A DNA stretch of 64,000 nucleotides, from NCBI RefSeq assembly GCF_902459465.1, contig NC_047067.1, forward strand, positions 12,028,001-12,092,000. The letters are read 5' to 3'. Source of the DNA: Asterias rubens (lineage: Eukaryota). The notes under the pieces were generated by a model. It was not told where the DNA came from and ran no database searches. It worked only from the letters and a program-made list of their open reading frames with translations. The position numbers were made by a program, and so were the translations under genes. Shown here piece by piece: positions 10,134 to 38,200 of this stretch. How positions within the stretch are numbered: the first letter of the stretch is position 1; each line of letters opens with the position of its first letter.

Positions 10134-10581
10134 ACACGTCCTTCTTATTCGGTCTTAGAATAGAGTATATTGCATAACCCGTCCGTTCCCAATTTACAGA
10201 CTTATCAAAGCCGTCCTTGACGTAAAAGGGAGGTCGTCATACAAACCCGAATCACAATACTTCTAATACAAATCTTAATAATTATAAAACCATGTTCGTA
10301 TCTATAGAGAATTTCACCGTGAGGTCCCTTTGCGCTGTCACGAATGTAACCAATTATACAAATTGGATGTTTTGAGTTGTGCTGTTTGGAATCCGGTTAT
10401 TTGATCCATAAACTGAACAGCAGTTTGGGAAAGAGCGGAAATCATAAGAACCGAGTTTCGATAAAGGGGGTGGGGGGGGGGGGGGGTTGGGGAGTCAAAT
10501 ACACTTATTGCGCAGTTTTCTTTTTGTTCCCGAGCTAAATTTTTAAGGGCAGGGAATCTTTACCATGCGAGAGTCAAAATC

Positions 10582-10978
10582 TTAAAGGCACTGGACACTA
10601 TTGGTAATTGTCAAAGTCTCTTCTCACTTGGTGTATTTCAATATATGCATAAAGTAACAAACCTGTGAACATTTGAGCTCAATCGGTCATTGAAATTGCA
10701 AATTAATAATGGAAGAAGAAAAAACAACCTTGTCACACGAAGTTGTGTGCTTTCAAATGCTTGATTTCGAGACCTCAAATTCATAACTTGAGGTCTCGAA
10801 ATCAAGCTCAAATATTGTAGTGAGAAATAAATTCTTTCTCGAAAACGACGTTACTTCAGAGGGAGCCGTTTCTCCGAATGTGTAATACTATGAACATCTC
10901 TCCATTGATCGCTAACAATTAAGTTTTTATGCTAACAATTATTTTGAGCAATGACCAATAGTGTACAGTGCCTTTTAA
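10582..10978. mobile_element. MITE family A
   Basis: TTAAAGGCACTGGACACTATTGG...CCAATAGTGTACAGTGCCTTTTAA. Confidence 0.85.
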
Positions 10979-11318
10979 ATCTGTTCGTATTGTGTTGGCA
11001 ACCAGTGCAAATCATGACAAATGTGTGCACTGAATGCACGTGTGCGTCTACAGCAGCGGGCTTTTGTAAGCGTTGCAATTAACTTATATAAATGTCAGAA
11101 AGATCATACAGTAAGCGGTTTCATGTATTATAGGACACACAACCAAATAAGAAGCCAATTCTACGGTGGATTTCGTATTTAAAAAGATGAATCAAAATAA
11201 ACTGAATGAACGTAACCTAATAAATTTAATAAACTGAAACAAACCAAACATAAATAACATAACTAACATTTAAAACAATTAATACATATTTATTAATAAA
11301 TAAATAGATTAATTGATT

Positions 11319-12113
11319 AACTATACGATCTGGCAGAAAACGAAGAAGACCTCCAGTTTCTAGTTTCAGAGTTTGATACCTTCAGCAAGAAAATTGGTCT
11401 GACAATAAACAAAAGCAAAACTGTCATCCAAGTCCTCAACAGAGTTAAGATCCAGCTTAACATCCAGATAGATGGTAAATCCTTGGACCAAGTCAAAAAC
11501 TTCATCTACTTGGGGGTATGATTTCAGAAATCCCCGTTAGTGAAAATGAAATCAAGCGTAGAGTTGGAGCCATGCAAAAGCTGAACTCTATGGACATCCA
11601 AAGACATCAAGAATTCAACCAAGCTTAATCTTTACAGAGTCTTGGTTCAACCAATAGCCACCTACAGCTCCGAAACATGGACACAAAAGAAAAACAGATG
11701 AACAGAGATTAAGGGTTTTCGAGATGGCATGCTTGAGGAAAATACTGGGGGTCACAAGAAGGGACAGACTTCGCAACACATGAGTACGTGAACTGCTTCA
11801 CTACTATAAAGATCTTCCAACTTCAATTAGGAAAACTAAACTCGAGTATGTTGGGCATGTGAACAGAATGGGCAATGGCCGATACCCCAAAATACTTCTA
11901 GAAAGCCACATTGCAGGAAACAGACCCAGGGGAAGACCAGGGAAACGATGGCTGGAAGACATCAAGCACTTCTGTGAAGAGGCTGACATACCATCTGTGG
12001 CAGCAGCAGGACACCTAGCAAGGAACAGAGACCTATGGAGACTCTTAGTTGGGAAGCCATCTTCGGGATCTACATCGGGAGGACGGCTATGATGATGATG
12101 ATGATGATGATGA
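11319..12113 (+). mobile_element. 5'-truncated RTE-clade LINE
   Basis: EEDLQFLVSEFDTFSKKIGLTINKSKT, IDGKSLDQVKNFIYLG and RYPKILLESHIAGNRPRGRPGKRWLEDIK...RNRDLWR. (GAT)n tail at 12089-12113. Confidence 0.88.
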
Positions 12114-13099
12114 CGAAACAAAAACTGACTAAATATTCTTAACGTCCTTCACGACGGGAATGAATAAAGTTTTTTTTTTATTTTTTTTTTTTACAATTGA
12201 CAAAAAGATCTTTTTTTCTATGTGCATTATTATAAGCATACGTAATTTTATTTAAAATATGTTATTCATTCATTTTAAAGCCGAGGTCATTCGTATATTG
12301 TATTAAGCAAAGCAGGGAATAATTTTCAGATTATACTTATTTTTCTCAATAGAATTCTTTATTTATTTCTCCTTTTTGATGCCCAAGGTCGACGGATTAA
12401 TTCCAAACAAGAGGTGTCCATTGAGACCCTCTAAGACTTGGTAAAAAAAAAAAAAAAAAAAACGCTGAGGAATGATTTTTCTTTCTCTCTCAAGCGATCA
12501 TTGACTCTCATCAAAATAATTCAACACGAAATCCTTATGTTTGCTGCGAACAGTGTGGTCCCGTTTGCCTACAATCGATGACGTGGCCACATGAGGGAAG
12601 GGGTCACGACAGGGTGCTAAACCCCGAACACTAAGAGCCCTTGCAAAAAAAAACCTGCTTTATGAAGAAGAAAAAAATGTGTCTTTCCCTCCGCTTGTCG
12701 TGTCCCTTTTCAAAAGTTTCATTTCATTTCATTTTATTCAGTAATTTTGTCTGTTTAAACCCAAGGACCCCAATCACTATGAACCATTTCCCCTTCCCAA
12801 GCTAAGATAAAATATTAAAAAGTGTTCTATTAGCCCTCCCCAGAAAAAAAACTACATAATAGCCTTTGCTTTTCCGTCCTCTTGTTCCCCAAAATTTAAT
12901 TTCATAAAATTTCAATCCAATTTATGTCATTTATTAGTGTTCGTTGTAAACCAAAGGACTCACTGAAAAGCGGACTTATACATTTTTACTGAGCCAATAA
13001 CCTAATGGAGAGAAGACCGGGATAGGAAATTAAGTTTCAGTTCGAGATGCAGGAGAAAAACCCATGGAGAAATATTCCATGGAAAACCCACGCAGTCAG

Positions 13100-13210
13100 G
13101 TAGGGAAGGGACAAAACCCAATTCACACAATGCCCCCACTGGGATTCGAAACGCAGTCCTAGAGGTGGGAGGCGAGGAAATAATTATACCACTGCTCCAA
13201 CTGGACTGCC
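13100..13210 (-). mobile_element. tRNA-derived SINE fragment
   Basis: Minus-strand B-box (complement of GGGATTCGAAAC) with a tRNA-like head. Confidence 0.45.
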
Positions 13211-13280
13211 CAAAATGAAAATTTTACGGTGTTGTATGATAGCGCCCTCTGTGAATCATCCTCCTGTAATAGACCTTTCG

Positions 13281-13535
13281 TAGGGTTTTAAGGTATAGGG
13301 TTTGGTTTGTAGGGTTAGGGTTGGGTTTGTAGGGTTAGGGGTAGGTTTGTAGGGTTAGGGTTTGGTTTTTGGGATTAGGATTGGATTTTAAGGTTAGGGT
13401 TTGATTTTTAGGGTTAGGGTTCGATTTCAGGGTTAGGGTTGGTGTTACTAGGGTTAGGGTTACATTTAGGGTTGGGTTTTAGAGTTATAGGTTAGATTTA
13501 AGGGTTAGGATTTTAGGGTAAGGGTTGGTTTTAGG
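13281..13535 (+). repeat. Interstitial telomere-like minisatellite (~18-19-bp unit built on TTAGGG)
   Basis: About 13 units of the form AGGGTTAGGGTT(T)GG(T)TTT. Confidence 0.85.
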
Positions 13536-15228
13536 CGGGCTTATATATCATCAAAAATCGGATCTACACCTTAAACTGCGCAATGGCACTCATGGTAAAG
13601 TTGACAACCAATACATTTTATTTAATAACTTTACAGTAAATTTTCATATCAACGCAAACAACAACTGAAGAAATTCCTGTTCAACTTATTCAATGCTTGA
13701 CCTTATTGCGTTTATTTACAACATCCGGGGCATACTGTAGAGAACCTGAGATGGAAAGACAAAATCCCAATGATTATTAGATTTAGAAATATGTTCATTG
13801 CAAACAGAGATTCATATCGTGAGAGAGATTCGCAGCGATTTGTTGGTAACAGCGCCCTCTCATTGTAAGCAATTGTGTCAAAGTCCTACATACTAACATT
13901 ACATGCAATGTACATGTACATAAACGACACGTGGACACAACATGCAGACGACTAAAAGCTCACGTCCATATCTGTGTTTTGATTGGTGCGAGTGTCGGCT
14001 GCGCCAATGGTCACCTCCGACCAATCAAAGCACAGCTACGGAAAGCTTACGTCACTACACGTTTATCCAATGAAATCATTGTACCCAATGGAATCGCTGG
14101 TTCTAAAAAGCAAGCACATGTTTAAAGACAGGGGACCAGTCTAGGCTTCCACAAAAGAATAATGTTTTTGTACTGTTCCTTCAGTCAGTCTCGCCCCTAC
14201 CAAAAGGAGGGAAAAACATACTCCTTGTGAATAAGAATCGAAGCTTTAGCATTTTAGAGCGGTATTTTCTGAAACTACACGAGTTTAAAGAAATACAAGG
14301 CAAAAAAACTCTAAAAGAAATATAATTATTAATCCTTGATCGTGAATTGCACTGGTATAATTTTATATTCCCCAAGTGACTGATGGAACCGCCCGACCCA
14401 CAGGCTAGGTGGGTCTATTATAACATTGAGTTGAGACTTCTTCACGTTCAAGAAATTCCTTACATTGTTATTGGACAAGCTTGTTACCAAGTAAATTCCG
14501 GTGTATGCAAATCATATTCTTATGCAAATTTATCGTCTCTGTGCTTTTGGATAGGAAAAAAGGCAAGAACAGCAAAGCTGTATAGTTTTACACGGGACGG
14601 CGAACGGACAACATGGCGACTCGTCGTGGTGGATTTGGACCTCGCGTATCGGACGAACTTGATCAGAGTTTCACTGTATATAAGTGACTCAAACTGTATT
14701 TCTATCTTTGAGTAGTTACTAGTCACATAGAGAACATTAGCTATGACATTCTGGAGGCAAAATGTACTTAAAACTTCAGACGAAAGTGACAAACATGGGC
14801 ACTTTTGCTATGGTGGATTATTTTCACCAAAGCTAGAGCACACCTCTCTCCAAAAAGTCTAATTTTGTAGTCGAGTTTACAACCTGCTTGAGAACTCTTT
14901 TTTGAGTTTTCGTGGGTTTGAGAATTCCTCGAAGTTTGACAGAACATTGTCGCCGGTGTACTCAACCAAACTACCGGTGTCATGGACTGACTTTGATGTT
15001 GAGCTTGCGAGTAGAGCTGGAAAGTTCCAGGAGTTTGTACATTCTTCAAAGAGACGACCACTTCACAACTGTCGGAAATGAACACCTTTCGAATGGACTC
15101 GCATTCTCCTGCTGAGCTTTCGCTTTTTGCTTGCGAGCTCCGTCGAGTTAGATGCTCTTCCCCATGTATGGACCGAACTGAGTTATCTGGATAATTGAAC
15201 TTGAATTTGAAATATTAACACATTTAAG

Positions 15229-15715
15229 TGACTGGTGTCAGAACTTTGAAACTTTAATGCCCACTTGGTGAAGAAAGAAGATATATGGATTGTGTGGTAT
15301 GGTAATTGGTGAAGAAAGAAGATCCATGGATTGTGTGGTATGGTAATTGGCTACAAGTCGTCCAAGTGACAAAAGGCAAGAACTTTAAAAAAAAGTGACA
15401 TTTGAGTTTTGAGTTTCAGAGCTCATCACTTTTTGCTGACTGTTGTCAGAACTTTGAAACTTTCATGCCCACTGGTGACTGGGTGAAGTCAGAAGATCTA
15501 TGGATTGTGTGGTATGGGTTTGGCTTCAAGTCGACCAAGTGGTAAGAAAAGAACTTTAAAAGTGACTTTTGAGTTTTGAGTTTCAAAGCTCAGCACTTTT
15601 TGCTGACTGTTGTCAGAACTTTGAAACTTTTATGCCCACTGGGTGAAGAAAGAAGATCTATGGATTGTGTGGTATGCGTTTGGCTTCCAGTCGACCAAGT
15701 GGTAAGCAAAGATCA
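15229..15715 (+). repeat. Tandem repeat, ~167-bp unit, ~2.6 copies
   Basis: TGACTG(G/T)TGTCAGAACTTTGAAACTTT starts at ~15229, ~15437 and ~15604. Confidence 0.85.
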
Positions 15716-18514
15716 TTAAGATGACGCTAAGTGGAAATCTAACCCCATTTCTTCCCAGTAACTGGCAGGTATCTGTTCATCTCGGTACTTGTTGATGTTG
15801 TCTACTACTATTGTCAATGGTTGAAGTCATCTACAATTTTTCTGAGAGGATTTCCTTGGTGTCGGGGCATTTTGGTCGTGGCCAGAGTGATGCATTGAAG
15901 TTAAAAAGTTTCTCTTGGAACATTTCCTATGGTTTGGAAGAAGCTCATGATGACTTGTTGTCATTTTGTTGTTAGACATTGGCATGATTAATTCTTTAAT
16001 ATTTTAGTATCAACTGTTCAGTTATAGATGACCCAGCAACTAGGGCACTGAATTTGGTGACATTTGGTTTCCTCTTTCAAACTAAGGAGAACTAGTAAAA
16101 ATCACAGACGTTTCTAGAAGCATCAAACCTCTTTGAGATTAAGCATTTATTCAACACTAGTGAATCTCTTAATTAAATTAATGGAGATTATTAAATACAA
16201 TGAAAATGATTGTTAGCAAATGTAAAATGCGTGCATCAAAATAAAACATAATCTGATTGAAATAAGTGTTTTATTTCTTCAGGAATAAACTTGTAAAAAA
16301 AAATGAAATTCCCCATCCCCCTCTTAACTGCTCCCAAATAGTGTAAATCAATGTTAAGGCAATTTGTGTACAATATATACTTGATAGATGATGATTTTCT
16401 TATCAAGGGGTATTTAATGGTTAATTTATAAATCTTTTGATATTTCTGATGAATAAATAAGATCCATTGTTTGTTAGCGGATGGACATTATGGCCCGCTT
16501 CAAAAAAAATAAAATTAAAAATTCTCAAACTTAGGTTTCAAGGCGCTGCGCAATCATTTTTCCTAGGTTATATTTTAATTACTAAAAAACAAAATAGAAA
16601 AACTATTTTCTTCATGAAGCTTATTCCGAACAGTGTAAAACATTTTAAGTGAAAAATTTTTCAGTGTTTACCTAGGCCTATTAGATGTTGATTTATTTCA
16701 GTTAGGAATATTAAAATGGTTAATTTAAAATTAATCATTTAATACTTCTGAGTAATCAATTACATCATTTGGTTGCTGCAAGCGATTAAGGTGCCTAAAA
16801 CAATTACAAAAAACAATAATTGTCCAAAACAATAATTGCTTTGTCAGCGCTGCGCGACATGCACTGCATCGAGGAGTCAGCAAAAAAAAAAAAAAAAAGG
16901 AGGAGGAGGAGGAGGAGGAGGCAGACAGAAAACAGACCTGCAGAGAAAAAGACATAAGAAGACATCCCTCTACATGGTGTGTTGTGGTAAGTATAATAAT
17001 GGGTTACAGAAATGGGACATAGAGTCGGCTCAAAACTTAAAGTGTTGTCTTTCCAAAGGTTCATCTCACTTGTTGATGTTGTCTACTAATATTGTCATTG
17101 GTGATGTCATCCACTCTTTTCTGATCCGGTTTTCTTGATTTGAGGGCATTTTGGTCGTGGCCAGAGTGATGCCTTAAGTAAAATAGTTTCTCATCGACCA
17201 TTTCTAGGTGTATGAAAGAAGCTGATTTTGTTGTCATTTTAAAGTTATACCTCTGTATTCATTCGCTAATACTTGAGACTGTAATGCACTTTGCAATCAG
17301 TTTGTTGTTCTCTAAATAGTTAGCTAAATAATATTATTTTGTAAGTCTATATAAACTGTAATTTTTGGGTGGCTATTTAAATAGCTTCCCAAAGTAAAAG
17401 TTTACATAGACTTACAAAAGTATACAACACATACCACATAAAAACTTAAAATAAAATCCCTGTTTCATGTCAAGAATCCCACAACACTTTCTCTAGAGCT
17501 AGTAAACGTTTGCCCCTTTTAAATCATCAAACCATTTTTAGAGAAAATGTTGTATTATATTAACATTTTGTAATGATTTTGTTAAATGAAGTAAATCATT
17601 TTTGTAGGATATCCCTAAAAAAAAATTGCTTACTTCACGAAAGTAATTAAAACCTACCCAATGAACACTAGAACAACTTATTAATGATAAATCAGTGTGT
17701 GCCCTGTGCACAAACTGACTAAAATTATAATTTTACCACATTTTTTTTTGTTTAAGATGAACTTGGCATAAAGACCCAACCCTTAACAATAGTGTTAAAC
17801 CATGTGAACTTGGTTAACATCAGGTAAACACAACAAAAAGCATTTGCAGTCAGTTTTTACACTGATAAGTTGATGACCTCTTTCAGTTAGAGATTAAGTT
17901 AATCGTTTAGTATTTCTGACAATTCACAAAACTTAGTTTCTTAGAGCGCTCCGCGGCAGGCAGGCAGGCAGGCAATGTGTTGCAAAGCGAGCCAAAAAAA
18001 AAAAAAAAAAAAAAAACACAGGAGAAGAAACAAGAAAGAGAGAGGTGTAACAAGAAACAGCTGAAACAAAGAAAAAGACACAAGAAGAAAATCTTGGTGT
18101 TAATGGTGATATTGGTATGTATAATGGTAAGTTGGTTAGCAGGGCATAGATTTGGCTTAGAACTTAAGTGTTGTCTTTCAACAGCTCCATGGCGATGCTA
18201 CTTGCTGTCATCGAGTGCTAAAGATGAAGACAGCTCCCTGGGTTGGTAATGTCAGGTCTTTAGCCCGGTTCATACTTCCTGCAAATGCTTCGTGCGAAAT
18301 GAATTTCTCTCCGCACAAAATTCTCTTCCAAAATTTGATTCGCATTCGCAGGAAGTATAAACCAGGCTTAAGAGGTACCAGACAGACAAGTTTGGAACTA
18401 CCAGAAGTACACAGATAGCCAATAGGTTAAGTACCAGCTGGACATGGGTAAGATCATGGTAAAGTCAGTGTTAACCACAGATTTCTCTCGTACATTATTA
18501 ACCCTAAAATTTTT

Positions 18515-18740
18515 CTTTGACAGCAACTAATCACAATTTACTTTAACAGTCAATAATCTTTTTCTTTTTTTCGACAGCAAATAATCACAATTTTCTTTCA
18601 CAGCGAATAACCATGTTTTTTTCCTTTGACAGAAAATAATCACAGTTTCCTTTCACAGCGAATAACCATATTTTTTTCTTTCGACAGCAAATAATCACAA
18701 TTTCCTTTCACAGCCAATAACCATATTTGTTTTCTTCCAA
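18515..18740. repeat. Tandem repeat, ~66-bp unit
   Basis: GACAGCAAATAATCACAATTTTCCTTTCACAGCGAATAACCAT recurs about 3.5 times. Confidence 0.8.
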
Positions 18741-23034: not shown

Positions 23035-23430
23035 ATAAATTCTACCTGGATGGATATCACAAAGAGGACTAGTCTTATCTGAAGTAACTTGTCCTAACTT
23101 TGAACCCGCCTTAAGTTTTATTAATTCCTACAGAGTCATGGGTGTGAAACTGACCCTGGTACTAGTCCTAAAGTACTAGTCCTAAAGTCCTAAAATAGGA
23201 CTATCTTTGTGACATTAACCCTGGTTTTAGTAGTAAAGTCCTAAGTTAGGACTATCTTTGTGAAATTGACCCTGGTACTGGTCCTAAAGTACTAGTCCTA
23301 AAGTCCTAAAATAGGACTATCTTTGTGACATTAACCCTGGTTTTAGTAGTAAAGTCCTAAGTTAGGACTATCTTTGTGAAATTGACCCTGGTACTGGTCC
23401 TAAAGTCCAAAGTTAGGACTAGCTAGCGAT
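23035..23430. repeat. Family E MITE with internally amplified ~115-bp tandem unit
   Basis: Alternating CTATCTTTGTGACATTAACCCTGG / CTATCTTTGTGAAATTGACCCTGG blocks. Confidence 0.75.
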
Positions 23431-26206: not shown

Positions 26207-27416
26207 AAGGCACTATACACTTTTGGATATTACTCAAAATAATAACACCTATTGTTAGCATCAAAACTTACTTGGTAATGAGAAACGGAGAGCTGTTGAT
26301 AAAATAAAACATTGTTAGAAATTGCTCCATCTGAAGTAATTTCACATTCAATTATTAAAAGACGTCAGGTCTGAAGCCTTTTTGAGCTAGCTAAAAGCAC
26401 GAACATTTTGTGCAACAATTGTGTTTTTATCTCTCATTATTCTCTTGCAACCTCGATGACCCATTGAGCCCAAATTCTCATAGATTTGTCATCTTGTGTG
26501 TATTATGTTGGGATACACCAAGTGAGGGTATACCTATAATGTATTTGATATGTTTACCAAAAGGTGTCCTGGGTTGGATTTCACATTAGGACTAGTCTTA
26601 TCTCAAGTTAGGACCAGTTACTCGTCCTAACTTAGGACTAGCCATACAATTTGTATATCTCCTAGGACTAGTCCTAAGTTAGGGCTAGTCCTAACTCTTT
26701 GTGAAATCTACCCCAGTGCCTTTAAAGCCATTATACACTTTCGGAACAGAAACATTAAATAAAAGAAGGTAATGGTGAAAGACTTCTCTTGAAATATTAT
26801 TCCATGAAATGCTTTACTTTTTAAAAACATTAATACAATTATCAATTCTCGTTATCGAGAATTACGGATTTATTTAAAACACATGTAATGACACGGCGAA
26901 ACGTGCGGAAACAGGAGTGGGTTTTCCCGTTATTTTCTCCCGACTCCGATGACCGATTGAGCCTAAATTTTCATAGGTTTGTTATGTTTTATATCCAAGT
27001 TGTGATACACGAAGTGTGGGCCTTTGGACAATACTGTGTACCGAAAATGTCCAGTTCCTTTAAAGGATTTGGATACCTTTTCAAAATGTCCACAGATTTA
27101 CATTAAACTTACAGTGTTTGAAGATAATGATAGTGGAAAGCTTCCCTTCAAATAATACTTACTGAGGTGCTGTAGTTTTTGAGAAATGAGTAAAACAATG
27201 TCATGAAAGTTTGTAAATGATTAAAATAATTTTCGTCTCGTGAGACGAATATTATCTTCATGACATTGTTTTACTCATTTCCCAAAAACTACAGCACCTC
27301 AGCACGTAATATTTTCAGGGAAGCTTTCTACTATCATTATCTTCAAACTGTGTAAGTTTAGTGTACATCTGTGGACATTGTGTTTTTTATCCTACAAAAG
27401 TTACATAGACCCTTTA
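26207..27416. mobile_element. Chain of TTAA MITEs (family A with nested family E, then family B, then a further palindromic MITE)
   Basis: Junctions CAGTGCCTTTAAAGCCATT (~26721) and CAGTTCCTTTAAAGGATTTGG (~27060) share a single TTAA. Confidence 0.8.
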
Positions 27417-28260
27417 AGCTGAGTCGACTAGTCCCAATGGAATCGAGACCATAATATCTTTCGTGTTAAGTCTTCTTGGGAGAACAATAATGCTAATCTA
27501 TGGTGAATTTCGTTTTTGGAAGGAATGAACAGAATAGTTTTGGGAATCAAATTGCTGATTAACTGCAAGTCATTGTCATCATCATGATCACAGGCGTCAA
27601 TTTGTCTCAGGGGAGGAGCGGGGTCCAGGGTGCCGCCTTTTTTTGGTTTTAGCTTGTCTCAATGGCGTAGTAGAAAAAACTTAATTGGTAAAACATATTT
27701 ACGTAACATTTTTATAAAACTGAGATTGGTTCAAACAAAGAAATTAACACGAAAGACAAGAACAAAAGCCCGACATACATGCACTCCTCTTTCTTCAAGG
27801 AATTCTTGAATTATTTGACATTTTATTCTTTGTTATCGATACTATTAAACAATTTAATTTGGCCATGCCAACCGGCGCACTTTGTTTTTCAACAACGAAA
27901 AGGTCTATTGACTCCAACCACTGGGTACCTACTTATATTGCTTACTCCACCATGGGCTCAATTTTATAAAGCTGTACATTTCTGTGTCAAGCAAAAATTG
28001 AGTGGAACACCAGTCATAAAATATGCTTTCATGCTACTTCGCTACGCTCATACGCATGAAAAACAGTTCAGTGTTAATGGACACGCCATAATAAAAGAAA
28101 TGGAGGCAATAGGATTTGATTCAAATTATTTATTTACAGCATGGGATAATGGTGGGATCACAAACACCGAGTCTTAAATTCCCTTTTTGAACTTCCAAAT
28201 TTAAGAAATACAGCACTGGATCATCTGATCCTCGTGTATCACTTCTGGTCATCTGACCAA

Positions 28261-28302
<42 letters not shown>

Positions 28303-28901
28303 CATTTAACTGGTCATCTGACCATGTCGGATCATTTGATCATCTAGCTCGTTCGTGCACAATTTCAATTAATCTTATTCAACTTAGTCGTTTCTGATCA
28401 TTCCTTGCAGAATCATTCCTTGCAGATGCAGAATCTCAATAAATTCGAATTAAGTACATCAACTCTCTTATAATTAGAACAAAAATTTCGTATAGATTCA
28501 AATTAAGTACATGTCAAACTCTCCTTAAGAACAAAATTCTCATATCTCAAATCTCTGGACGAGCCACCTGGCTGTTTCGTAATGTTAAATATAGTAATAG
28601 GAAAATTCTGATGCAAATCATTATACACAGCCAAATTACGTATATGCACAATTTCAACGAGTCAGACAATTTTCTTAACATAACAATATTTAAAACTCAA
28701 ATCTACAAGCCACTTAGTCGTTTCGGATCGTCTGCTCCTTAAATTATTAATGCAGAATTCCAATAAATTCAAATAATAAGTACACGTTTCAACTCTCTTA
28801 TAATAGAAAAAACTCGTCTGCTCCTTAAAACGTATCAACTCTCTTATAATAGAAAAACTCTCTTATTATACTGGACGGATCACCCGACCGTTATACAGTA
28901 A

Positions 28902-29933
28902 GCCTACTCTTTGAAGAGTTTCCCTGACATGTCTAGTCTTTGTTTGATATCCCATTTGACGTATCTGTTTTTAGCCTCAGTGGTCTTCCAGCGACCTTGT
29001 TGCATTATCAAAGCTTCAGGAACATGTTGGTTGGCTAGGTGGGAAGCCCCGCCTGCAGGCGGGGGATCTTAGGCTATGAAGGCCGTATACCTTTGGATCG
29101 GTTACGCCTATGCGCCTAAGGGCCTCAAAAAACAACTCTCTGCACCTAGTGTAACTTAAGGGTCTATCAGCGCCAATTTTGTACGTTTTTGTACTGGACA
29201 AAAATATAACAGGGGTGAACAGATATTTGTCTTGACCCAGATTGATCCCGGCAGCCTCTAAAAACCGGCGTAAAATCGCAACTGGTGAGTAGGTGTCCAG
29301 TGTGTCGCAAAGAAAAGCAGTACTACCATCCCTGAAAATGTCGGTTTTTGATTTTGGGATAAAGATTGAAATACCCTTATTGTTTGGCAATTCAGATAAG
29401 TGGGTAGCCTTCATACCTGCCATCTCATTGTGAGGAAAAAGGAGAGCATATTTGAGGGAGACATAGCAGGCAGATCTAAGATCTAAAAGCGAGGCATCAG
29501 GACCCGCGAAAAGGTCGACAATGGCTTTGACCTGGCTAAGGGAAATTGGCTGTTTTTGTGCGGGCGGATGATGTATAGTTCCCGCCTACCGCTGACTATC
29601 ACATGTTGAATGATGGGTGCATCAAGCGGGTTACTTTTGACATTAACCAATGAATGTAACCATCTCAATGAAGCAGCAGTAGAAATCAAAGCACTATCAG
29701 AGTTTGAATGTGATTTTATATGTGACAGGTAAATTGCTAACACTTGTTCAGAAAAGGGGAGCACCAGAGGAATACCTTGCAATTCTAACAAGGACAAAAA
29801 TTTACGACATTTATAGAAATAAGCCATAACCGTACCCTCGGATTTAGCAAAGATTACATCTAGCAGCATTATTTCTTTCTGGGCTTGGAAATTGAGGGGG
29901 AAATCGAGCCAAAATGGGTGGTTTCGGACTATC
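28902..29933 (-). pseudogene. Tyrosine recombinase of the retrotransposon (frameshifted)
   Basis: N-terminal SAM-like part (ORF 29483-29944), IFIPKSKTDIFRDG, YGLHSLRS and QQGRWKTTEAKNRYVKW. The first catalytic Arg position appears to read P (LLFPHNEM). Confidence 0.88.
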
Positions 29934-31181
29934 TGTATGCACAAAAAAAAAAAGAGAGAGGAAGAATTAAGAATGAAAATATGTGATACTCACACTGTAC
30001 AAGAGTGAGAAGGGATTAAACTGGAACAAAGTCTAGATATGCGGCTGCAACGCAGCCTATAGGGAGTTGTGATTTCTGCCATGTTTAAGTGCGAGATAAC
30101 CACCTTCAGTAATGAGGTCCTTGACCCAGGTATATGGTATTGGGACCATAGTAAGGGCCAGAAGGGTTGCGAAGGCCACCAGGGGAAAATTATTACGCCT
30201 TTACATTTGCAAAGATGCATGTGTTTAAGGGTGGATGCCACTAAGGCTACAGGGGGAACCAACAATGCATTTTCACCGTGCCAGTTCTGGGCAAAGGCGT
30301 CTACACCCGAAGAACCTGGGTTCCAAAAACGAGAATAAAATCGGGGCAGTTTAGCATTGTAAAAAGTAGCAAAGCAGTCAATTGTGAATGGACAGAAAGA
30401 CAGAAATCTGTAAGAACGACTGGAACGTTTTCATCAAAGGCGGCTGCGATTGTCATTTGACAGTGACGAGTCATTAATCTAGAAATACTACCACCAACGG
30501 GGGACAACGAAATAATTTGGCCTACGAATGAATGCAAATCTCTTATTGTGAGAGATGTATGTTGCTGTAGAAGAAAATCAATGGGGGCATGGATTTATTA
30601 ATCTTAACAATCCTACGATCAAGAATCTTAAGTGTGCCCTGTGCAGTGTCCCATCTCATACCTAACCAATCGATAGTATTTACAGGGCTCCAAATACTCT
30701 TAGAAATATTGTATACAAAACCTGCTTCTAAAAGATCAGAACGAATGTGGTTAGAGATGTTTAAGGCAATCTGGTTGTGTTTTGAAGATTCCTTTGGTCT
30801 AGGGATGACAATGAAACCATCATCCAAGTAGAGAGCTATTAAAACTCCACATGACCTCCAGTGGGTGACCAAAGGTTTCAGAGCTTTGGTAAATATGTAA
30901 GGAGCGGATTTGAGCCTGAAAGGCAAAACTGTAAATTCGAAATGTCTGACTACCCCGTTAATAGACCAAGAAAATCCCAGATAACATTGGGAGGCAGGGG
31001 CAATGTCAAAATGATGGTAGCCCGATTTTAAATCGAATGTAACCGTGAGAGCATTTTGTGACAGAAATTGAATACCCGATTTCCAGTCGTCCAAGTTAAA
31101 GCGCGTTTTTGGTATGAATTTGTTGAGAACGCTGAGATCAAGAATAAGTCTATTTTTCTTGGAAGCTGAGCATGAGACAGA

Positions 31182-31764
31182 TGTGGTGAAACGAATTTTG
31201 GTATACATCACACTTTTGTTGAATGATGTAACCAACTGAGGGCGCTCTTTCACTTTAACGGTGAGCGTGAGGATACATGTTGTAAGGTTGTGAAAAGGCC
31301 AGACTTTGGGGATTATTTTATTGTCAGAGGAATTTAGTCTCATTCTCATCGATACCGGTAGTATGTAAATTATTTGCAAATAATTATCTAAATATTTAGA
31401 ATGTGATAACCAACTTCCAGGTCTTTATGAGTAAGTTGAGTAACTTAATTAGGCTGGGGCGTATGAACATTAGCCGGGTTAAGGAACAGGGTTTACTTTT
31501 GGTCCCTTTTCTGTTTTGGTCGCCAAGTTGCCAGGAGTGTGGTCGGAGAGAAGCTCTTAAAAGTTGTTTTTAACAGAGAAATAAGATGACCAGATGACCA
31601 AATAATTGTTCTATAGAAGACAGATCGGTTGGTTTTTCTTTGGAATTGAATGGAGATGTAAATATATCATGATATGCTGAGGAGGGTGTGAGTTGAGCCT
31701 TCGCAACCCAAACAAGGTGTCAAGCCTGATTTATTTGTCTTCGGACTAAATTAAAAACACTACA
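31182..31764. mobile_element. Solo LTR (583 bp) inserted in the RT
   Basis: Starts TGTGGTG and ends CACTACA; 4-bp TSD CAGA at 31178-81 and 31765-68. Removing it restores in-frame SPLSVSC. Confidence 0.85.
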
Positions 31765-32094
31765 CAGATAAAGGACTGTTCACGATAAGGATGAGATTTT
31801 TCTGAAATACGGGAAGAAGCCAGTAAATCTAAAATGGAATCTGTTACAAATTTGGCCTCGCGTAAGGCCGACTTATTATTCCTGAAAAACATAGGAGGGG
31901 GTTCCTCTTCAAAAGGGATTACATAACCTTGCTCGATTATTGATAAAATCATGTCAGGGGAACCTATATCACGCCAGAATTGAACATGTTGTTTTAGTCT
32001 CCCTTTAACTGGTAAATTATCAGACTGTAAGGATGCCTTTTCAGGAAAACAATGTACCTTCAGAACGTCATCGAACTTATTGCGAATATTGTCT

Positions 32095-32381
32095 TTACTG
32101 TGCCTTTGGCAATGTTGAGGCGGTGCTGGTACTGGCGGTATCAAAAGACCCTGTCGGGGCATATCGCTGGTTGCCTGCTTGGGACAATGCTCTCTGGAAC
32201 TGGTAGGATGGGGCGTGCCATGATGGGAATGGAGGTCTCTGCCCGGTGAAAGGGACGGCTGGTGTGGGTCTTGCCTGATTTCGGTAACGTGAGTAGGTGT
32301 TGGAACCAAAGGAGTAGGGGCAATTTCTGGACCAATGGCCAGACATTCCACAGGAGAAGCACGACTCAAAAGACGGCATGC
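32095..32381 (-). pseudogene. gag: gag exon 2 with CCHC zinc knuckle, overlapping the pol frame
   Basis: Acceptor TTTTTTCAG|GC is phase-compatible with exon 1; CFSCGMSGHWSRNC. Confidence 0.75.
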
Positions 32382-32910
32382 CTGAAAAAACACAATTTTG
32401 AAAAAAGAGAGAAAGAAAAACGGCGACTGGAAATACAAAATAAAATATTTTATCAAATTAAACCCTTTGCCCGGGAGGGTGGGAGGGCACTAAGTCAGGT
32501 TTAAAGTATTATTGGCAAAGATAGATGATACTCGGTGTGTTTGTGAAATCACCTGAATGGGGAAGCTGAGAAAGCGCTTCATTTATATAGGGGTACGCTT
32601 GAATGAGTTAGACTATCAAACACAATGGTATGGGTGCATCTCTAACGCAAGGAAAGCATAAAATGCAAATTAGAGAGAAGGCCTATGGCGCGCCAAACAG
32701 ACAAAACTAAATTTTCATGCTACTTCGCTACGCTCATACGCATGAAAAACAGTTCAGTGTTAATGGACACGCCATAATAAAAGAAATGGAGGCAATAGGA
32801 TTTGATTCAAATTATTTATTTACAGCATGGGATAATGGTGGGATCACAAACGGCTTTTGAAAATTGACAAAGTATAATAGGTAGGGGTTTAACAAATCGC
32901 TTTACAATAC

Positions 32911-33439
32911 CTCGAAAAAGATGGCGATCAGGATGACCAAATGTGGGCCTGGAACCACTCTGCTGGTGTTGCGGAGCCTCATTCCGTCGCCGCTTGCGCG
33001 ACTCTATATCTTTCAAAGCAGCTTCCTCTGCGACGAGAACCTGTTCTGCTGTTCAGCAGTCAATTTGTCGACGTTGGTTTTGTCTAGATGTGACACGGTA
33101 CCCCAGCCGGCCTTGCTGGAATCGGCTATTCGAACTTTCTGCTTTCTTTCGGCAATCAGGGTCGTCCCTTCTTGTACGGCTTGTAGGGCTGCTTCGATGT
33201 TGATATCGACGGTCAAGGCAGATTGGATTTTGCAAAGCACAATCTCGAGTTGTCCGCAGAATTCGTACTGGGCGATATTGCCTGGTCTTGACAGATCTTT
33301 GGCTTCAAGTTTGAGTTTGAGTTCTTTCAGCGCCGTAGAGTCATTAGGTGTTTTGTTGATAGCGCTAAACTTAGCGTCGAAAGTCTTTAAACTTGTCAAA
33401 AATTTCGGCGGTTTGTACGTGGTCGCTTGAAGTAGACAT
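32911..33439 (-). pseudogene. gag: gag exon 1 of the YR retrotransposon (frameshifted)
   Basis: ATG at 33439 directly follows repeat A1. RPGNIAQYEFC...ERKQKVRIADSSKAGWGTV. Ends CGAG|GTATTG (phase 1). Confidence 0.75.
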
Positions 33440-34457
33440 GTCAGGTTTAAAGTATTATTGGCAAAGATAGATGATACTCGGTGTGTTTGTGAAATCACCT
33501 GAATGGGGAAGCTGAGAAAGCGCTTCATTTATATAGGGGTACGCTTGAATGAGTTAGACTATCAAACACAATGGTATGGGTTCATCTCTAACGCAAGGAA
33601 AGCATAAAATGCAAATTAGAGAGAAGGCCTATGGCGCGCCAAACAGACAAAACTAAATACACTTAATATAACTTTGGCTGGTGACCCGTTTTTTAAGCAG
33701 TTACTTTTCTACGCTTAGCAAACTTTTTTTGTGTGCTTACAGACTGTATGAAATTGGGTCATGGTCCGAATACGTGCGTGGTCATGATTTTTTTCCCCCA
33801 TCCCTCTCGCTCGAGTTAACTGAAATGATGTTGAGTTTTTCAAGACTCATGCAGTAGTTTATAGGAATCTTGGTTCATGATGCAAAATATATCCATAGTT
33901 TGTTATATTTGTACGTTATACAAAAAGTCCTTTTCGTTAATGTTGTCATTGAATAACAGATTATTCCAGGTTCAGGCGTGATAAGTCCATAGGGAGCAAT
34001 GAACGCCTCTCGTTAACGACTATCGGTAAATTGATGGTAATTTTTTTTATAGGACAAACAAAATATTTGTAAAGGCTTTTGAAAGATCATTAGGCTAATT
34101 ATTTTTCCCTATTCACAGTAGACTTGTATATTTGTTAATAGCAAAGAAATTAATCAGCTTGATTGAAATTATTGTTTCATTGTCATGATAATGTAACAGA
34201 CTAATTAGCAATTAATCAGTGTGAGCACTTGATGCACTTTCAGAACAATAGTGTGTTGTTGGTTGGGTTATTTCAGAGGCTGCATTTCTGCAATAATCGT
34301 TTATTTCTGAGTTTTTTTTTTTTTTTTTAAATATGTTTGACTTGTCATGTGGGTTCCTCGCTTATGGTGGGTTCGCAGTAAAATATTTATGGTAAACATC
34401 ACATCATATTAAAACTATATGAATTTCAGCAATCAACTAAAAGCCTGTGTTATCCCT

Positions 34458-35374: not shown

Positions 35375-36127
35375 ATGAACTTCGTACGTCTTTTGGTGGC
35401 TGGGTGTCTGTCTGGGATGTTTGGCCAAGCGGTGGTCAGAGCGATTCGCGCCCTTGGCTGTCCCTATGGTTGGAACCAGCTTGGTCAGTCGTGCTACAAG
35501 ATGGTTTCTGCCGAACCACTCAACTGGCATGAAGCCCATCAGGCATGCCTTGATGCTGGAAGTGACCTGGCAGTACCACATTCAAAAACCAACAACGATT
35601 TAATTTGGAACTTACAGAAACACATTCTGAAGACCTTATATAAGAATAAAGGGGCGACCTCCCTTTGGTTGGGCTGCACTTATGGCAAAGAGGTCCCCGG
35701 ACAGTTGAAATGCTACAGCGATGGTCGGGACGGGTACCAGAACTGGGAAACGAACGAAGAACCCCAGAACGGCACATGCATATCCATCAAGAAGTCCAGT
35801 GGATATTGGGGGAACGCAAACTGTAATGAGGGAAAGCGTTTCCTGTGTGAGATAAAAAACATGCCGTGTCGTCTTCGCTGCTTCTCAGTCAACATGAAGA
35901 ACTCACCAGATCATCAAGAAGCCACACCCTACTGTCTGCGCGACCACACCTTCAAGGAAACCGAGATCCAAAACCCCATACAGTGCTGCCTGGCCTGCTC
36001 CAAGGATCCCAACTGCCACTCCTTCAACCTGTCTGGGAAGATGTGCCAACTCAACAATGTCACCATCTCCCAGGTTGATGCTGACAAGTACTTGAAGGAG
36101 AACTGCGTCTACTATGAATACGAGTGA
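35375..36127 (+). CDS. Secreted C-type lectin domain + PAN/apple domain protein, single coding exon, 250 aa
   Basis: Hydrophobic N-terminus; CPYGW..CY, WHEAHQAC, LWLG, YQNW, WGNANC..FLCE; then CLRDH...CCLACSKDPNCHSFN...CQLN. TATAAAA ~50 nt upstream. Confidence 0.93.
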   Translation: MNFVRLLVAGCLSGMFGQAVVRAIRALGCPYGWNQLGQSCYKMVSAEPLNWHEAHQACLDAGSDLAVPHSKTNNDLIWNLQKHILKTLYKNKGATSLWLGCTYGKEVPGQLKCYSDGRDGYQNWETNEEPQNGTCISIKKSSGYWGNANCNEGKRFLCEIKNMPCRLRCFSVNMKNSPDHQEATPYCLRDHTFKETEIQNPIQCCLACSKDPNCHSFNLSGKMCQLNNVTISQVDADKYLKENCVYYEYE

Positions 36128-37984: not shown

Positions 37985-38200
37985 CTTTCCCGAGTTCTGT
38001 GACAAAATAACCGGCATATTACTCGGGTGGGACTCGAACCCACGACCTTTGCCAATCTAGAGCAAATGTCCCATCAACTAGACTACCGAGATTGCCCGGT
38101 AGATAGTGGCAGTTCGAACCCATGTTTAGCAGCGGGTATTGCAACGACTTTCGAATCCCATTGCTAGCGAGTAATATGATTTTGTTAACAGGACTCGAGA
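37985..38200 (-). mobile_element. tRNA-derived SINE (double B-box type)
   Basis: Minus strand has GGTTCGAACTGCC, then A-box TAGTCTAGTTGATGG, then GGTTCGAGTCCC. Confidence 0.6.

Follow-up and report, generated by a model that had tools for sequence, protein, structure and literature searches.

The 64,000-nucleotide stretch of the Asterias rubens genome analysed here, hereafter the window, carries on its minus strand a 5.6-kb retrotransposon (28027-33658) whose gag gene is split by a 529-nt segment enclosing an internal junction of the element's two terminal repeats. The best explanation, and in our judgement a probable one, is that this is a dead copy of a Pat1-like element, that a conserved phase-1 intron of gag holds the repeat junction B1-A2, and that splicing would in this way sort the RNA into messenger and replication template.

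Read in its own direction, the element consists of A1, gag exon 1, the segment with 59 nt, B1, A2 and 112 nt, then the CCHC exon and pol, a tyrosine recombinase (YR) and B2. A1, the 5' terminal split direct repeat (219 nt, 33440-33658), carries the TATA motif TATATAAAT at 33535-33527 and 5' untranslated sequence, and the flanks upstream of its initial ATTTAG differ from copy to copy. It is followed by gag exon 1 (32911-33438, ATG at 33438-33436), which encodes the N-terminal Gag domain, shares 76% identity with the corresponding part of the Patiria protein P0001, and has a frame that is broken twice here and open in the copies L033 and L034. Next comes the putative phase-1 spliceosomal intron of 529 nt (32382-32910), running from GTATTG through a T-rich tract to CAG, with the boundaries used in RefSeq models of sister families. 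Its 5' part, from the donor to B1, measures 59 nt (32852-32910) as judged from copy alignments; B1, the internal copy of the 3' terminal repeat (139 nt, 32713-32851), contains AATAAA at 32820-32815 and ends in about 40 nt that are kept across families; A2, the internal copy of the 5' terminal repeat (219 nt, 32494-32712), has the same TATA as A1, at 32589-32581; and the 3' part (112 nt, 32382-32493) contains the pyrimidine tract and the acceptor CAG and is free of ATG.

Beyond the acceptor, gag exon 2 (32095-32381) encodes the CCHC zinc knuckle, which gives a zf-CCHC match, and a C-terminal tail ending at the stop TAA 32097-32095; the knuckle ORF comprises 94 codons (32379-32095), and the pol frame overlaps the exon throughout in +1. 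The pol region (29990-32456), broken here and traced from ORF fragments and from domain matches of the open copy L033, encodes reverse transcriptase (RT), RNase H and a putative Dam-like methyltransferase, and alignment with other copies delimits within it a nested solo LTR (31182-31764, TG...CA, with a 4-5 bp duplication). The YR gene (28904-29944), recognised by the Phage_integrase match in L033, is split into several ORFs; the 3' untranslated region (28166-28903) shows short internal repeats and an A run in its sequence; and B2, the 3' terminal split direct repeat (139 nt, 28027-28165, AATAAA at 28134-28129), is the same as B1 and closes the element with GCATGAAA.

The 529-nt segment starts at CGAG|GTATTG and finishes at TTTTTTCAG|GC, and its excision produces the in-frame fusion ...HLFR-G-MPSFESCFSCGMSGHWSRNC. 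The coordinates and motifs given in the original prediction all hold on the minus strand, and its central observation, that B1-A2 lies wholly within a GT-AG segment splitting gag ahead of the CCHC knuckle, was borne out at 32382-32910. Recomputation also confirmed what it had said of the repeats. A1 (33658-33440) and A2 (32712-32494) are both 219 nt long and differ at one base, A position 77 (33582 versus 32636), while B1 (32851-32713) and B2 (28165-28027), both 139 nt, show zero differences. B1 abuts A2, giving the junction GCATGAAA|ATTTAG, and the shared TATATAAAT lies at A position 124 in A1 and A2, as AATAAA lies at B position 32 in B1 and B2.

The final 40 nt or so of B (32712-32754 and 28027-28068) are kept in all families. 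This conserved end contains a 9-nt inverted repeat, TTTTCATGC ... GCATGAAAA, which straddles the B|A boundary with a 19-nt spacer, and in sequencing runs the piece is 5-10 times deeper than the rest of the element, with many different flanks. The inverted repeat is a candidate recombinase site or priming structure. In two families the unspliced exon 1 frame stops at a TAA inside or beside the B1 poly(A) signal (window 32814-32822; L044 about 2533-2541), so that an RNA ending at B1 would be nearly devoid of a 3' UTR or would have no stop codon.

As part of the overall explanation, we assign the element to the echinoderm form of the Pat1-like elements, that is to the PAT-like tyrosine-recombinase retrotransposons of the DIRS order. 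Its best-preserved copy, L033, has four ORFs: a 177-codon open exon 1, the CCHC ORF, a 764-aa pol and a 342-aa YR. Pfam matches in this copy include RVT_1 (3e-15), RVT_3/RNase H and Phage_integrase (2e-7), and RT, RNase H and YR were likewise recognised in a further family, L052; no rve or protease match was obtained with Pfam in L033 or L052. A methyltransferase-like domain after RNase H separates DIRS and PAT from Ngaro, and the Dam matches obtained here (19.3 bits in L033, 24.7 bits in L052) are below the Pfam cut-off of 28.1. Split direct repeats, as opposed to inverted repeats with an internal complementary region (ICR), separate PAT-like from DIRS1-like elements, and a Gag zinc finger marks Pat1-like elements as opposed to Toc or kangaroo. 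The zf-CCHC match in exon 2 reaches 24.3 bits against a cut-off of 20.8 and becomes linked to the Gag N-terminal domain only after removal of the intron. By eye, no target-site duplication was seen in the flanks of at least eight copies at ATTTAG... and ...GCATGAAA. Taken with the split direct repeats and the absence of target duplications, the domains of L033 indicate a PAT-like element of the DIRS order, in agreement with the original prediction, which had called it a PAT-like YR retrotransposon with an A1...B1A2...B2 layout; RT, RNase H and YR domains were found alongside the split direct repeats. The echinoderm and nematode forms of Pat1-like elements differ in the position of the internal repeats, and the Gag zinc finger is present in the echinoderm form (PMC4157794).

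The pol frame is open, in +1, over the whole of gag exon 2 in diverged families (window 32095-32456; L033 1801-2102; L044 2939-3226). In L044 a pol-frame ATG lies 7 nt into exon 2, and none lies nearby in the window family. Inspection by eye around the acceptor revealed no alternative donors or acceptors that would put exon 1 into the pol frame.

The layout is not peculiar to this locus. In the genome searched (417.6 Mb, 150 contigs) exon 1 occurs at nine sites, eight of which belong to the window family (including L037, 76-79% identical) and the ninth to the distant L044 family, and at all nine exon 1 is followed by B1-A2 and then by the CCHC exon. The upstream flanks of the eight window-family copies are unrelated to one another, and since the layout recurs in seven other places with unrelated flanks, it is neither chance nor an assembly artefact. 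The genome search recovered no copy of the family with a contiguous gag; such a copy would have spoken against the original prediction. Further families that possess A1, exon 1, the donor, B1A2, the acceptor and the CCHC exon are L052, L053/L044 and L054; they show about 45-52% identity in Gag exon 1, and their repeat pairs are identical or near-identical. L052 is young, as it has many identical copies. The survey of copies and relatives that the original prediction had called for therefore found the junction in gag with the same sites in eight copies, four families and Patiria miniata. In this second species, locus L046 has A1, exon 1, the donor, B1, A2, the acceptor, CCHC/pol, YR and B2, with the same splice sites. 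The order of genes in the contig of P0008 (ORF1, an 880-nt gap, RT/Dam, YR) also fits the layout. At L046 a Pao-type LTR retrotransposon with identical 843-bp LTRs is nested in the 5' part of the intron (10569-18557), and the RefSeq model at this locus splices over 8.5 kb despite the nested element.

Related YR elements of the same genome carry the junction elsewhere. In L057 (contig 23) B1-A2 lies between pol and the last ORF, in L058 (contig 12) it lies after YR, and both have one uninterrupted gag ORF with CCHC that aligns through the junction. There are thus three placements of the B1-A2 junction within one genome and, judging from these sequences, gag is interrupted only where the junction is placed inside it.

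About half of the copies are of a different kind. Seven (L038-L043 and L045, on contigs 6, 22, 11, 4, 22, 18 and 7) start exactly at A (ATTTAG) beside unique flanks, continue directly with the 3' part of the intron and the CCHC exon, and have no A1, exon 1 or B1. A tree of the shared region scatters them among the full copies, which indicates that they arose repeatedly, most likely by recombination between A1 and A2. No reciprocal A-exon1-B unit was found in the genome. A circle with two junctions that resolves into two circles was also considered as their source and is unlikely, as there is no A-exon1-B mini-element.

That the 529-nt segment is a real intron of gag is very probable from the comparison of copies and from gene models. 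In every lineage the donor is CTTTTTCGAG|GTA and the acceptor AG|GC, in the same phase 1 (LFR|G...CCHC), with GT and AG also kept in L037 and in Patiria, and intron lengths range from 431 to 529 nt. Pyrimidines make up 67-73% of the 30 nt before AG in the four families counted. Among these four families the ungapped identity is 0.68 before the donor and 0.34 after it, then 0.46 before the acceptor and 0.61 after it, and the read-through tails that follow LFRG are unrelated between families, with lengths of 4 to about 45 codons. Moreover, in a search of 1.84 billion representative proteins many homologues aligned as a single stretch over the exon junction into CCHC. The L053/L044 family is especially informative: its exon 2 begins with TTG and not with ATG, the five codons up to the next ATG are in frame and similar (LPHAD versus MPNAD), and an in-frame stop lies in the intron, 6 codons upstream of AG. 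A family that has no exon 2 start ATG, keeps the frame and has an intronic stop upstream points to translation entering from exon 1.

Some features count against an intron. In most families exon 2 opens with its own ATG, so that the CCHC ORF could be translated without splicing, and the donor deviates from the consensus at +4 to +6. The conservation of phase is also partly automatic, since the exonic bases beside both splice sites are conserved anyway. A genome search with the spliced junction, allowing up to 2 mismatches, yielded three acceptor regions and two matches without similarity to the element, with no intron-less DNA copy among them. This absence fits our model, and it fits the complete absence of splicing equally well.

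Gene models place the introns at the same positions. The RefSeq models P0001, P0005 and P0006 (Patiria) and P0157 (Asterias rubens), which may rest on RNA-seq or on homology, are exact spliced products, and such models use these sites in four families and two species. Aligned with L052, P0157 gives two blocks of 100% identity, one ending at GT and the other starting after AG; this match marks the genome searched as that of A. rubens or of a very close relative. In a collection of 5.8 billion proteins the spliced forms consisted of RefSeq models only, with no transcript-derived spliced protein among them, and the spliced junction had no match in metagenome contigs.

For RNA, contigs of the runs X1 (a metatranscriptome), X2, X3 and X13 were placed on 31765-33700. 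None of them contains the exon 1-exon 2 joint; X1, with a depth of 3-4, is the only run on record as RNA, and since contigs drop rare variants the four-run check is a weak negative. The donor is crossed unspliced by contigs of X13, X2 and X3, and by X1 by only 7 nt, and the acceptor by contigs of X1, X3 and X13. Their many genomic flanks suggest that X2, X3 and X13 are probably DNA, and unspliced RNA is expected anyway for a replication template. The original prediction of a spliceosomal gag intron is upheld as regards the conservation of GT-AG, phase and position, and spliced RNA is absent from the contigs of these four runs. The sole joint found in the runs (33374 to 32494) was rejected as a splice, since it represents the boundary between A and exon 1 in a deletion copy resembling L036, mapped on A2. 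The X1 contigs cover A positions 85-219 with exon 1, and A2 positions 85-219 with the 3' part of the intron and exon 2; B1, the 5' part of the intron and A positions 1-84 are absent from them, at a depth of 3-4 that is too low to interpret.

The proposed mechanism follows from how such elements are thought to repair their ends. According to the current view of PAT-like and Ngaro elements, the terminal repeats are restored in reverse transcription on a template provided by the internal repeats, and in DIRS-1 the internal region is essential (PMC6681497, PMC7192593). In the present element the distance from the TATA to the 3' end of A is 96 nt, and the poly(A) signal is found 32 nt into B; a transcript would accordingly be short of about two thirds of A1 and of most of B2. 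The complete junction would be carried by B1-A2 alone, and under the published PAT/Ngaro model B1-A2 would be the sole template for restoring the outer A1 and B2. The unspliced full-length A1-to-B2 RNA would then serve as the replication template, and the spliced RNA would give complete Gag (about 271-277 aa) and may also open the way to pol, whose frame overlaps exon 2 in +1 (L033 and L044). Spliced RNA, having no junction, could not give rise to a complete copy; its inability to regenerate the ends would explain why the intron is not lost. It is plausible that splicing sorts the gag messenger from the replication template, a reading that can be soundly derived from the published model of end repair. 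In addition, the donor, which precedes the B1 AATAAA by 94 nt, may help transcription to read through the internal poly(A) site, and A2 may act as the promoter of a subgenomic RNA in which the first ATG is that of the CCHC ORF.

A bolder version, which we regard as possible and put forward tentatively, is that an ancient echinoderm PAT-like lineage obligately retains the intron as a replication checkpoint, with four RNA classes and a donor that doubles as a U1-dependent suppressor of polyadenylation. Each locus would produce a short A1-to-B1 RNA, a subgenomic A2-to-B2 RNA, the full-length unspliced template and the spliced messenger for Gag and Gag-Pol, and the intron would be immune to loss since it holds the end-repair template.

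The same arrangement can be read as two transcription units with no productive splicing, A acting as promoter and B as terminator, an alternative that we consider unlikely. The A1-to-B1 RNA would then encode an N-terminal Gag with a variable tail and the A2-to-B2 RNA the 94-aa CCHC ORF, pol and YR; a rare A1-to-B2 read-through would be the template, and GT and AG would be kept for other reasons, such as the start-codon context GGCATGCC. Several observations suit such units: A2 equals A1 save for one base and has the same TATA, the B1 AATAAA is as in B2, no ATG occurs between A2 and the start ATG of exon 2, and exon 1 read-through stops in the region of the B1 poly(A) signal. Relatives of the L057 type, with B1A2 between pol and YR, would need A2 to express YR, a contig of the RNA library X1 runs unspliced from A2 via the acceptor into exon 2, and copies exist that start at A without exon 1. 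What two units leave unexplained is why conservation is lost exactly at GT and comes back exactly at AG in four families, with a T-rich tract before every AG. They also fail to account for L053/L044, in which TTG replaces ATG, LPHAD stays in frame and resembles the MPNAD of other families, and a stop lies 6 codons upstream of AG, for homologues that hold both parts in one protein with similar spacing, and for the RefSeq models that splice here in four families and two species.

U1 bound at a 5' splice site is known to suppress nearby poly(A) sites in HIV-1 and in cellular genes, and the donor might be nothing but a U1-binding site that suppresses the B1 poly(A) signal 94 nt downstream, with splicing absent or incidental. 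Its position agrees with this, as the donor precedes B1 by 59 nt in the window family and by a similar distance in other families, and no donor lies upstream of B2. We nevertheless judge this reading quite improbable, since the conserved acceptor, the pyrimidine tract, the phase and the one-protein homology would be left without explanation; suppression by U1 is in any case compatible with the intron as an additional role of the donor. Virtually no credence can be given to a one-off rearrangement, tandem insertion or assembly artefact at this locus. At a single locus a tandem of A-gag-B and A-pol-B would look alike, and we found nothing in its support; the idea is refuted because the layout recurs in eight copies whose flanks differ, in four families and in a second species, and exon 1 was never seen as a separate A-exon1-B unit. 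The conserved intron that holds the repeat junction remains the reading that we prefer.

The window copy itself is no longer functional. Copy alignment and the ORF list place two frame breaks in its gag exon 1, near 33375 and near 33028, so that of the codons ahead of the donor no more than the final 66 share the frame of the CCHC exon. Its pol has been interrupted by the 583-bp solo LTR (31182-31764) and has lost about 490 bp of RNase H near 30393, and its YR is fragmented into several ORFs. The description of the element in the original prediction stands as to the layout and overlooks that the copy is dead, with broken gag exon 1, pol and YR. The inserted 583 bp are a solo LTR, and two LTRs of the same family lie about 9.9 kb apart on contig 16; this pair, in direct orientation, occupies about 9992241-10002949.

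On another contig, between other flanks, there is a defective copy, L031, that is nearly identical to the window copy (about 100% in gag and pol), and two further copies contain the same solo LTR, so that four element copies at different loci share it. The LTR was evidently carried along in retrotransposition, and a near-identical defective copy together with copies bearing the same solo LTR at other loci indicates that dead copies were mobilised in trans. The window copy must have been such a dead passenger, moved in trans.

The surroundings of the element contain other features. Just outside it, an intronless ORF of 250 codons on the plus strand (35375-36127) combines a C-type lectin domain (3e-14) with a signal-like N-terminus and a weak PAN/apple match. 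ARAGORN reported a tRNA-Ser(AGA) gene or tRNA-derived sequence on the minus strand at 38019-38092. On the other side there are a MITE-like pair of inverted repeats at 27082-27382 (126 nt, 90% complementary, 49-nt spacer) and a tandem repeat of 116-nt units at 23143-23425.

The closest known system is SpPat1 of Strongylocentrotus purpuratus (Goodwin and Poulter 2004, via PMC4157794), which resembles the present element in having RT, RNase H and YR and, if the weak Dam matches are genuine, a methyltransferase-like domain. SpPat1-type elements also share with it the order A1-B1-A2-B2, a Gag zinc finger, internal repeats placed unlike those of the nematode form, and an echinoderm host (PMC4157794). 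An intron or splicing in PAT-like elements is mentioned nowhere in PMC4157794, PMC3266345 or PMC6681497, although this literature includes a paper devoted specifically to the echinoderm form and its Gag zinc finger. The element type is thus known, and our search of the accessible PAT-like literature found no description of the intron, which may nevertheless have been described before.

The nematode form of Pat1 and those PAT and DIRS elements whose junction is close to the 3' end, L057 and L058 among them, obey the same repeat logic and have a homologous Gag N-terminal domain with CCHC, RT, YR and a putative Dam-like domain. They differ in that the junction lies between pol and YR (L057) or after YR (L058), so that gag is uninterrupted and a splice unneeded. 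In DIRS-1 the ICR is likewise an internal copy of terminal sequences that is needed for restoring complete ends, but the terminal repeats are inverted and the ICR is found close to the 3' end, outside gag and outside any intron.

Retroviruses offer a parallel of another kind: the major 5' splice site precedes a cis element required for replication, with the result that only unspliced RNA is propagated, and the HIV-1 donor has the further effect of suppressing a poly(A) site close by. The retroviral element is a packaging signal, however, whereas the intronic piece described here would be an end-repair template, and the unspliced RNA of retroviruses is also the messenger of gag-pol, whereas here complete Gag would need spliced RNA. 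Splicing or retained introns are known from other retroelements, namely the gag mRNA of Drosophila copia, the legume Ogre elements and Penelope-like elements, and as in the present case a spliceosomal intron in the transcript survives retrotransposition. To our knowledge none of these introns holds a sequence that regenerates the ends.

These results have practical consequences for annotation, since such echinoderm gag genes are at present listed as 'uncharacterized CCHC-type' host genes, and any search for Pat1-like Gag that takes no account of splicing will overlook half of the protein. The three junction placements within one genome also make the evolution of the split direct repeat layout testable. 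Copying from RNA normally strips introns, and an intron that holds the sequence from which the ends are rebuilt would explain its own persistence. If the proposed mechanism is true, the retroviral division of labour would be reversed, unspliced RNA being unable to make complete Gag, and a poorly understood class of retrotransposons would have a simple physical separation of messenger from template.
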